Positions 10,908-13,261 are shown, numbered from the stretch's first letter. The stretch is 64,000 nt of DNA from Vitrella brassicaformis CCMP3155 (GCA_001179505.1 CDMY01000427.1:14556-78555), one strand, 5' to 3'. Numbers and translations: made by a program. Notes: generated by a model from the sequence alone, not told the origin.

Positions 10908-13261
10908 TTATGCCGCGACAGCGATGTTGAGGCCGGTGCCGGGGCTGACGACGCCGTCCTTGGCCGCCATGATGGCGATCAGGTCCACCAGACGTGTGGA
11001 ATAGCCCCACTCGTTGTCATACCTACGCACACACACACATACACACACATGGACCGGCGAGAAGTCCATGAAGGGTGTTTGTGCGGGTGAGTGTTCGTGT
11101 GTGGTGGCGACACTGACCATGAGACGATCTTGACGAAGTTGGGGTTGAGCATGATGCCGGCCGAGGCATCGAACACGGTCGAGCACTCCTCGCCAACGAA
11201 GTCCTTCACAGACATCAACCACACACATCCATCTGTCCACCCATCTGTGTGCCCTGGCTGCCGCGTACACACAGGTACCTGTGAGACGAGTGCCTCCTCG
11301 GTGTAGCCCATGACGCCCTTCATGTAAGTCTCGGATGCATCCTTGACTGCCGCCTTGATGTCGTCCCAGCTGGTGGACTTCTCCAGCCGGCAGGTCAAAT
11401 CGACCACAGACACATCGATGGTCGGCACGCGGAACGCCATGCCCGTCAGCTTCCCCTTCATCTCGGGCATGCACTTGGCAACAGCCTTGGCGGCACCTGC
11501 ATAGAGAGCAGACCGCACACACACGGCAGAGAACTCCGCATTGATGTCTCCCTAGGCGTGTGTGTATGTTGTAGGTGTGTACCAGTGGACGATGGGATGA
11601 TGTTGGCACCAGCGGCGCGGCCTCCCCTCCAGTCCTTCTTGGAGGACGAGTCGACCACATACTGGGAGGCGGTGGCGGCGTGGACGGTCGTCATCAGACC
11701 CTCAGCAATCCCGAACTTGTCATGGATCACCTTGACGATCGGGGCTAGACCTGACCATGAATCGGCCAGACAGACACACAAATACAGGCAGGCATGACGC
11801 CAGCTCGTCTCTGTCTGTGTAGTGTTTAGTGCGTTGCATACCGTTGGTGGTACACGACGCGCAGGAGACGACCTTCATGTCGGGCTGGTAGTCCTTCTCG
11901 GCGTTGACACCCACCACCAATGTCGGTGTCTCGGCGTCCTTGGCAGGGGCAGAGATGACCACCTTCTTGGCACCCTTCGGGCTGACACAACACACACACA
12001 CACACACAGAGAGAGAGAGAAGAATATCCACTTGCCGTCTCAATGGGCTCGTGTGTTGGGTTTTTGGCTCGGTCGCTCACCGGTCGGTGTGCTTGAGGCA
12101 TCCCTCCGTGGTGCAGAAAGCGCCGGTCGACTCGCAGACGTAGTCGACGCCGGCCTCCTCCCAGGGAATTTCAGTGGGGTCGCGCGTGTCGCTGAGTGTG
12201 ATGGCGTGGCCGTTGACCACCAGCTTGCCGTCCTTGACCTCAGCAGTGCCCTTGAAGCGCCCGTGGGCAGAGTCGTACTTGAGGAGGTAGGCCATGTACT
12301 CGGGGGCCATGGGGGAGTTGACATGCTTGACAACCATGTCGTCCCTCTCCATGGCAATCCGGAAGACCAGCCGACCGATGCGGCCGAAGCCGTTGATGCC
12401 GACCTTGATGGGCGAGTTGGGGTCGGACGACATGGTCAGCAGCTGCTTGGCCGACACCATGCGGGCGGGGGACGCCAGGGAGTGGCGGGGGCGGAGGAAG
12501 GTGCGGGTGGAGGGGGCAGACACGGCCGGCAGGAAGCCCTCAGACTGACACACAGACAGACAGAGATGCATCACACAGAGGGGCGGTGGATGGATGTGTG
12601 TCTGTGTACCTGTGCGAGCATGGTGTTGAGGATGTTGAGCTCCTCCTCCCTGCTGTCCTCCTCCTGCGCGTAGTTGGACGCGATGAGCTGGCAGAGGTCC
12701 ATGCTCTCCACATCCTCGGGAGTGGTCGTCTCGTCAGTGATGATCCCCTCGCGCACCATGTCAGACACAACCGCCTTCAACTCGCCATCAGTGAAGTGGC
12801 TCTGAAAAGGCGGACAAAGGCAGGAGCGATGTGCATCATTAGTGTTGTGTGGACGTGCAGGGTGGGCTGCCTAACCATGTAGCAGTGGTCGTCTGTGGTG
12901 AGGAGCTTGAGGTAGCTGTCGTCCAGGACGCACTGCTGCTCCTGCGTGTACTGGCATCGTGGGTGCTCCTCACACGCACTCACCTCGTCGTCATACTCCT
13001 GGCAACTCGCATCCGTGTACTCGCCTGCACCAGCCACCGGCCACACAACACACATGAGATGAGAGATCTGCACGATGTGGCAGATCTATGCGTCTGCATG
13101 CGGTGCCGCTGACCGAACGCATTGTGGAAGTAGACGTTGAGCTCCCGCCCCTCATTGGTGTCGACGAATCTGAAGTGCTTGGGGGCGATGATATCGGGAG
13201 AGCAGTCCGTGGCCGAGGCAGCCACGCAGCCCAGCACCAACACGCACAGCACGCACTTCAT
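10908..13261 (-). CDS. GAPDH: Glyceraldehyde-3-phosphate dehydrogenase, plastid GapC1-type, with a long N-terminal extension (signal peptide + Cys/acidic domain + transit-peptide-like segment)
   Basis: Motifs [74 protein letters not shown] and YDNEWGYS. Upstream exons 13114-13261, 12876-13024 and 12610-12801 join in phase to the exon starting at 12544. Confidence 0.95.

Follow-up and report, generated by a model that had tools for sequence, protein, structure and literature searches.

An acidic, cysteine-containing domain is encoded between a predicted signal peptide and a transit peptide-like segment of a plastid-type GAPDH in Vitrella brassicaformis

The window analysed here, a stretch of 64,000 nucleotides from the genome of Vitrella brassicaformis CCMP3155 (GCA_001179505.1, CDMY01000427.1:14556-78555), carries on its minus strand a glyceraldehyde-3-phosphate dehydrogenase (GAPDH) gene of nine exons and eight introns, whose reading frame of 1680 nt (559 codons) ends with a TAA stop at 10910-10908 (Table 1). 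Exon 4 (12544-12081), with which the enzyme part opens, is preceded by three exons of 148, 149 and 192 nt, which add up to 489 nt, or 163 codons before SEGF; the codon split by intron 1 between exons 1 and 2 reads GGC (Gly). An initial annotation of this DNA had proposed that these three exons are fused in frame to the GAPDH. When we re-read the strand and translated each exon separately, its coordinates for exons 1 to 4 on the minus strand all held, as did the canonical GT-AG borders with matching phases (introns of 89, 74 and 65 nt) and the count of 163 residues ahead of SEG-F. It was also right in stating that a direct splice of exon 1 to exon 4 breaks the frame. The loss of exon 3 alone would preserve it, and no such joint occurs among those listed for the transcript contigs of four sequencing runs.

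Table 1. Features of the Vitrella GAPDH gene, in positions of the window.
Feature	Position	Strand	Basis
5' UTR	13262..13296	-	Transcript contigs of four runs begin at 13283-13296
Predicted signal peptide, 17 residues (MK, 13-residue hydrophobic core, AASA), start of exon 1	13211..13261	-	Hydropathy and small-residue rule
Remainder of exon 1: inserted domain, residues 1-32 (1 Cys), and first base of the split Gly codon	13114..13210	-	Sequence
Intron 1, 89 nt, GT..AG	13025..13113	-	Sequence and contigs
Exon 2, acidic block, 5 Cys (Cx9C ... Cx7C), net charge -11	12876..13024	-	Sequence and contigs
Intron 2, 74 nt, GT..AG	12802..12875	-	Sequence and contigs
Exon 3, acidic, predicted helical, 64 residues, net charge -13, 1 Cys	12610..12801	-	Sequence and contigs
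Intron 3, 65 nt, GT..AG, contains TGATG at 12573-12569	12545..12609	-	Sequence and contigs
SEG, then Phe-initial transit peptide-like stretch (34 residues, FLPAV...LLT)	12434..12544	-	Sequence and alignment to relatives
Start of the mature GapC1 enzyme, NAD(P)-binding domain, Ser32 (VNSP), Arg77 (TRDP)	12081..12433	-	Gp_dh_N, E = 2e-38
Five further GAPDH exons: 11981-11842, 11750-11583, 11496-11279, 11203-11118, 11022-10908 (including TAA)	10908..11981	-	Sequence and contigs
3' UTR	10702..10907	-	Covered by transcript contigs

The gene is transcribed as one spliced mRNA. Sequencing runs that contain 0.59-0.65 of the query words show the share expected for exon-only RNA, and the contigs of four runs from three studies were placed on positions 10600-13900 (3,301 letters). 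Spliced contigs of 1957 nt (run X1) and 1946 nt (run X2) reach from 13296 and 13285, respectively, down to 10702. These contigs show seven of the eight intron junctions, six as listed joints (13113/13023, 12876/12801, 12610/12544 and three inside the GAPDH) and the seventh from adjacent contig pieces; the eighth, 11118/11022, lies within a repeat-masked stretch and was read from the sequence alone. The decisive joint between exons 3 and 4, 12610/12544, is present in runs X1, X2 and X11, and run X10 has contig overhangs on both of its sides (12547 and 12610), so that the fusion is supported at the RNA level in four runs from three studies. The transcripts thus do not follow the scheme by which the initial annotation said it could be refuted, in which an upstream ORF ends at 12571, GAPDH starts from an independent transcription start site and no reads join 12610 to 12544. 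While the spliced joint places exons 3 and 4 on one RNA, we infer the continuity of the full-length message from the assembly. In each of the four runs, the 5' ends of the contigs fall at 13283-13296, 22-35 nt upstream of the ATG, and no spliced leader was found at them. The k-mer depth of exons 1-3 was about 8860-9760 versus 6820-9940 for the GAPDH exons in run X11, and 2044 versus 2480-3580 in run X10. A 255-nt loose end at 12565, seen in runs X1 and X10 and considered as an alternative 5' exon, proved spurious: it belongs to another genomic contig (C433) and shares with intron 3 only an (ACAG)n run.

Exons 1-3 are coding beyond chance, and their codon bias matches that of the enzyme. Their GC3 amounts to 0.84-0.88 compared to 0.80-0.89 for the GAPDH exons, with intron GC at 0.52-0.58, and codon log-odds calculated with a codon table of the GAPDH exons are positive solely in the predicted frame.

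Divergent from the GAPDH gene, a papain-family cysteine protease gene occupies 13399-15600 on the plus strand. Its exon at 14437-14556 matches Peptidase_C1, a membrane anchor is likely around 13720-13790, and two joints (13459/13612 and 13784/13875) are confirmed. The 5' ends of the two transcripts lie about 100 nt apart (13296 versus 13399 or lower), a distance that points to one bidirectional promoter for both. Contig depth, a crude measure, is roughly 6-14 times higher for the GAPDH than for the protease gene.

The initial annotation had taken the enzyme for a plastid-type GAPDH, and its diagnostic residues and nearest relatives bear this out. Both the Gp_dh_N domain, matched by exon 4 in Pfam, and the Gp_dh_C domain are present, together with the catalytic Cys (ASCTTN) and His (TTVHA). 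Four determinants of the NADPH type are found: Ser32 in VNSP, with Asp32 lost, Arg77 in TRDP, and Ser187 and Ser188 in VDSSS; the catalytic SCTTN and the S-loop VDSSS are encoded within the five downstream exons. Ser188, Arg77, Ser or Thr at position 187 and the loss of Asp32 have been described as converged NADPH determinants of GapA and GapC1, whereas cytosolic enzymes carry Pro188 (PMC3728087). When the enzyme part of exon 4 was used in a word search, all of the best 78 matches (62-78% identity) that span these positions carry INSP (in a few cases INGA) and TR-DP, with a leader, while lower matches (at most 63% identity) have Asp32 (NDP or NDL) and neither Arg77 nor a leader. On the strength of these residues and of the nearest relatives in the word search, rather than of a formal tree, we assign the enzyme to the NADPH-type, plastid GapC1 GAPDHs, as the only member of this type in the genome.

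The genome searched comprises 72.70 Mb in 1,064 contigs and holds two full GAPDH genes. The second, on contig C908, is of the cytosolic type (Lys77, Pro188, an MPVK start and no leader), which leaves the gene described here as the one candidate for the Calvin-cycle enzyme. Contig C687 holds a GAPDH fragment only. Two further loci, on C260 and C364, were ruled out as alternative plastid GAPDHs, as they offer a Rossmann start only and lack the C-terminal domain. These two are paralogous (at about 5400-5700 and 4870-5470 of their respective excerpts), sharing KVAINGFGR.G...VAIND followed by a ...LVDT(S/T)RGAGR.V motif, without Gp_dh_C. In the cytosolic gene on C908 (4270-4360 of its excerpt), the start codon is apparently split by an intron (AT|gtaagt...cag|G CCC GTG AAG, giving MPVKIGING), which could explain an odd public gene model.

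The order encoded by the Vitrella gene is signal peptide, 146-residue acidic Cys domain, SEG, a basic transit peptide that opens with Phe and measures about 34 residues, and enzyme. Residues 1-17 are predicted to form a cleavable signal peptide: the mean KD hydropathy is 2.66 over 15 residues, and Ala occupies both -3 and -1 of the cleavage site AASA|T that rule and hydropathy suggest. The 45 residues that follow the acidic domain consist to 60% of Ser, Thr, Ala, Pro and Arg, with a net charge of +3 and no Cys. We compared this arrangement with that of the closest relatives. In P0119, which is 78% identical, a 16-residue signal peptide ending in ADA is followed by Phe, a 19-residue basic stretch and MSTNPDAPIK; in the L018 orthologue, 71-75% identical across exons, a 16-residue signal peptide ending in ACG is followed by Phe and a 15-residue basic stretch. 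Ordinary leaders in these nearest relatives thus measure about 37 residues, of which the transit peptide accounts for 15-20. In the alignment, the +1 Phe of P0119 and that of L018 both coincide with the Phe of Vitrella SEG|F, which substantiates the earlier reading of the segment after the domain as a transit peptide. What Vitrella lacks is a bipartite leader in which the transit peptide directly follows the signal cleavage site, since 146 + 3 residues (SEG) intervene.

The earlier view that the 163-residue prefix is exceptional likewise agrees with our search hits: about 215 residues precede GFGRIGR in Vitrella versus 14-89 in GapC1 relatives, a comparison in which the word search admitted proteins of at most 271 residues and excluded long-leader relatives by design. 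The genomic contig of L018 is free of this size bias, and its 10.6 kb contain no match to any of the three 5' exons of Vitrella. As the signal peptide of the close relatives directly precedes the aligned Phe, the block is a lineage-specific insertion, or a 5' gene fusion, exactly at the junction of signal and transit peptide. Chromerid leaders are usually 40-80 residues long (PMC6668581), and the transit peptides of complex plastids are strongly positive (PMC6115763). The inserted domain, which follows the signal cleavage site immediately and whose net charge amounts to about -26, cannot itself serve as a transit peptide.

Some further observations concern these relatives. The contig that carries L018 (Logan, SRR30664515; 10.6 kb, GC 0.69) is gene-dense, the intron positions of its GapC1 gene differ from those of Vitrella, and neighbouring genes encode an MFS transporter, a PRKCSH-domain protein and a mitochondrial carrier. 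Sediment metatranscriptomes (runs X3-X5) contain 6-20% of the words of this stretch, which suggests the presence of Vitrella or a near relative in marine sediments.

The inserted block of 146 residues contains 34 Asp/Glu versus 8 Lys/Arg and seven Cys, with spacings of Cx9C and Cx7C in exon 2. Folded individually, without an alignment, exon 3 yielded four short helices (pLDDT 76), and exon 2 two short helices, a hairpin with the Cx7C pair on its strands and a further helix (pLDDT 70.5). Judging from these models, the domain looks partly folded. HMM and structure searches of the domain, which the initial annotation had suggested, were carried out exon by exon, so that a distant fold spanning exons may escape them, and returned no relative. 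Pfam gave no match, and the domain is single-copy, with no paralogues of its exons in the Vitrella genome, where a weak match of exon 2 on contig C752 (E = 0.28) falls within another ORF that is rich in Cys. An exhaustive HMMER search of 1.84 billion representative proteins with exon 3 produced four matches (E = 2.5e-6 to 4e-4), which we discarded as repeat artefacts: they are long tandem-repeat or coiled-coil proteins, mutually unrelated and matched in 4-8 stretches each. No candidates emerged from word searches with the transit peptide-like part (among proteins of 85-271 residues) and with exon 2 (54-171 residues), and no relative from an Atlas feature search with exon 2 (best score 0.81) or from two metagenome scans. 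The exon-3 model had no specific match in the PDB (Foldseek) or in an Atlas shape search, and a sequence search of the PDB found nothing but a ParB-like chain (E = 0.016). We found no paper describing this GAPDH domain. By the standard of Pfam, CP12, PDB, HMMER and metagenome searches, which did not trace its origin, we regard the domain as an orphan.

How might such a precursor reach its destination? The cell is photosynthetic and has no second GapC1 gene, so that the enzyme must still arrive in the stroma. The reading we favour, to which we give about an even chance, is that the domain acts as a pro-region or passenger in the ER lumen and is removed before the transit peptide comes into play. 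The signal peptide would bring the pre-protein into the ER lumen, where the acidic Cys domain could fold and would probably form disulfides. A lumenal protease would then clip off the domain at or near ...LAQ/SEG|F, exposing the ancestral Phe-initial transit peptide, which would carry the GAPDH over the inner plastid membranes to the stroma for trimming to about 359 residues. No recognisable protease site was found at the boundary between domain and transit peptide, and tying the neighbouring secretory-route protease to the processing of the GAPDH precursor would be pure speculation. Apicomplexans do not obey the +1 Phe rule without exception (PMC6115763), and the Vitrella enzymes UROS, UROD and CPOX have a signal peptide but no transit peptide (Woo et al. 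2015), which indicates that Vitrella may follow looser or different import rules. Tentatively, and with well under even confidence, we suggest that chromerid plastid import may tolerate a folded, acidic, disulfide-bonded domain before the transit peptide, or may require lumenal processing dedicated to it.

It is also conceivable, though we think it unlikely, that the gene makes two products, the N-terminal domain being a functional protein of its own, located in the secretory route, the ER or the periplastid compartment, that is produced in equimolar amounts with GAPDH and cleaved off, while GAPDH goes on to the plastid. The gene-like codon bias of the domain, the folding of its single-exon models (pLDDT 70-76) and a Cys content that suits an oxidising lumen would fit such a product, and plastid fusions do exist in chromerids, for example SBP3-HDR in Chromera (PMC3971594). 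A stand-alone homologue, however, was found neither in the Vitrella genome nor among the 1.84 billion proteins searched with exon 3, nor by the word searches and metagenome scans. Moreover, the precursor is devoid of the repeat-unit structure of known algal polyproteins, in which tandem mature units follow one leader and are separated by short processing linkers; it comprises one enzyme unit and an unrelated extra module before the transit peptide. The polyprotein inferred in the initial annotation is not supported.

Distinctly less credit is due to the possibility that the fused protein stays in the ER or secretory route and that the stromal enzyme derives from a minor isoform, either retaining intron 3 or initiated internally at ATG 12571. 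This ATG, in frame with exon 4, overlaps the stop reached by read-through from exon 3 (in TGATG) and opens a short hydrophobic stretch of 12 residues directly before SEG|F; it would come into play in intron-retaining RNA only. For Vitrella, two GAPDHs that have a signal peptide or are extended at the N-terminus are on record, and in the same work one GAPDH is labelled '(ER?)' and one plastid-assigned GAPDH receives an ASAFind 'No' (Fussy et al. 2019); our guess is that Vbra_15241 (plastid, signal peptide scored, ASAFind 'No'), rather than Vbra_3476, best fits the gene described here. However, no contig in the four runs keeps intron 3 or begins within it, although contig assemblies may miss minor isoforms, a counterpoint to the pro-region model, and 12 residues would make a very short signal peptide. 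In a control on all eight introns, every 3' end translates in frame and free of stops into Cys/Val/Leu-rich sequence, with an in-frame Met in three of the eight, so that the signal-like look of intron 3 is not distinguishable from chance, and we dropped the interpretation of its 3' end as a relic signal peptide. An internal start at MLAQ, which the initial annotation had offered as a source of an organelle presequence, fares no better: it would provide no signal peptide and so could not bring GapC1 into a four-membrane plastid, and no contig backs it, with the proviso that a minor isoform may escape contigs.

We consider it very unlikely that the domain enters the stroma together with GAPDH to act as a built-in redox regulator, comparable to CP12 or to the CP12-derived tail of land-plant GapB. 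An acidic segment with Cys pairs (Cx9C and Cx7C) does recall such regulators, Arg77 and Ser188, which are tied to the CP12 contact in GapA (PMC3728087), are present, and no CP12 gene was detected in a six-frame search of the genome, which can miss an intron-split gene of 70 residues. Yet the domain has no Pfam CP12 match at E <= 1, no AWD_VEEL core and, with Cx9C and Cx7C in place of the Cx8C of CP12, the wrong Cys spacing; being located upstream of the transit peptide, it would also need to pass through four membranes in front of the targeting signal. The proposal of a domain that is redox-active via its Cys residues finds no support. Hardly credible, finally, is a start of translation at Met 12460 or 12433, with exons 1-3 as a long leader or upstream ORF, since, although both of these ATGs are in frame and closely precede the mature N-terminus, exons 1-3 have a strong frame-specific codon bias, the first ATG of the mRNA is 22-35 nt from its 5' end, and without a signal peptide a GapC1 enzyme would not get to this plastid.

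GapC1 is a textbook marker for the common origin of red-derived complex plastids, and its leader is the model example of the rule by which Phe and a transit peptide come immediately after the signal peptide. In Vitrella, a free-living relative of malaria parasites, an essential and highly expressed Calvin-cycle enzyme breaks this rule of four-membrane import, while close relatives obey it. The gene thereby constitutes a natural experiment on whether a transit peptide has to stand at the N-terminus once the signal is cleaved, on whether a lumenal unmasking protease exists, and on how new coding sequence can enter a targeting leader without killing an essential gene. On the practical side, predictors of the ASAFind type will score Vitrella GapC1 as non-plastid. 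Should chromerid import indeed tolerate, or process in a dedicated step, such a domain before the transit peptide, the precursor would represent a new class of pre-proteins, built from signal peptide, pro-domain and transit peptide, and would imply either an as yet unknown protease of the ER or outer compartment that unmasks transit peptides, or transit peptides that work internally.

Among known systems, N-terminally extended fusion precursors occur in the TPI-GAPDH fusion of stramenopiles and in the polyprotein precursors of dinoflagellate and Euglena plastids, and the Vitrella precursor is extended in the same sense. TPI-GAPDH, however, is mitochondrial and its partner a known enzyme, and the dinoflagellate and Euglena polyproteins consist of tandem copies after a leader. 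The closest counterparts are the GapC1 enzymes of cryptophyte, alveolate, stramenopile and haptophyte algae (for example Chromera KC899100, P0119 and L018), which share with Vitrella the clade signature Ser32, Arg77 and Ser188, the motif of the mature N-terminus, a signal peptide and a Phe-initial basic transit peptide. In these relatives signal peptide and Phe adjoin directly, in leaders of about 37-90 residues, whereas in Vitrella 146 acidic residues and SEG lie between them, in a leader of about 200; the Chromera GapC1 gene, with a cDNA of 1,994 bp, is moreover intronless (PMC3971594), while that of Vitrella has eight introns. Chromera velia SBP3-HDR is likewise a chromerid nuclear gene in which a single signal peptide precedes two modules, as cDNA and genome confirm (PMC3971594), but both of its modules are known enzymes placed after a bipartite leader, unlike the orphan module that precedes the transit peptide in Vitrella. 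CP12 and GapB's extension at the C-terminus also couple a small acidic segment with Cys pairs to a Calvin-cycle GAPDH; the GapB extension sits at the C-terminus of the mature enzyme, with Cx8C and AWD_VEEL, whereas the Vitrella domain is N-terminal, before the transit peptide, and has no match to this family (PF02672). Apicoplast proteins with non-canonical or recessed signals (PMC6115763) are exceptions to the signal-then-transit rule within the same wider lineage. There, the exceptions are membrane proteins or involve recessed hydrophobic patches; in Vitrella, a soluble acidic domain separates the signal peptide of a stromal enzyme from its transit peptide.
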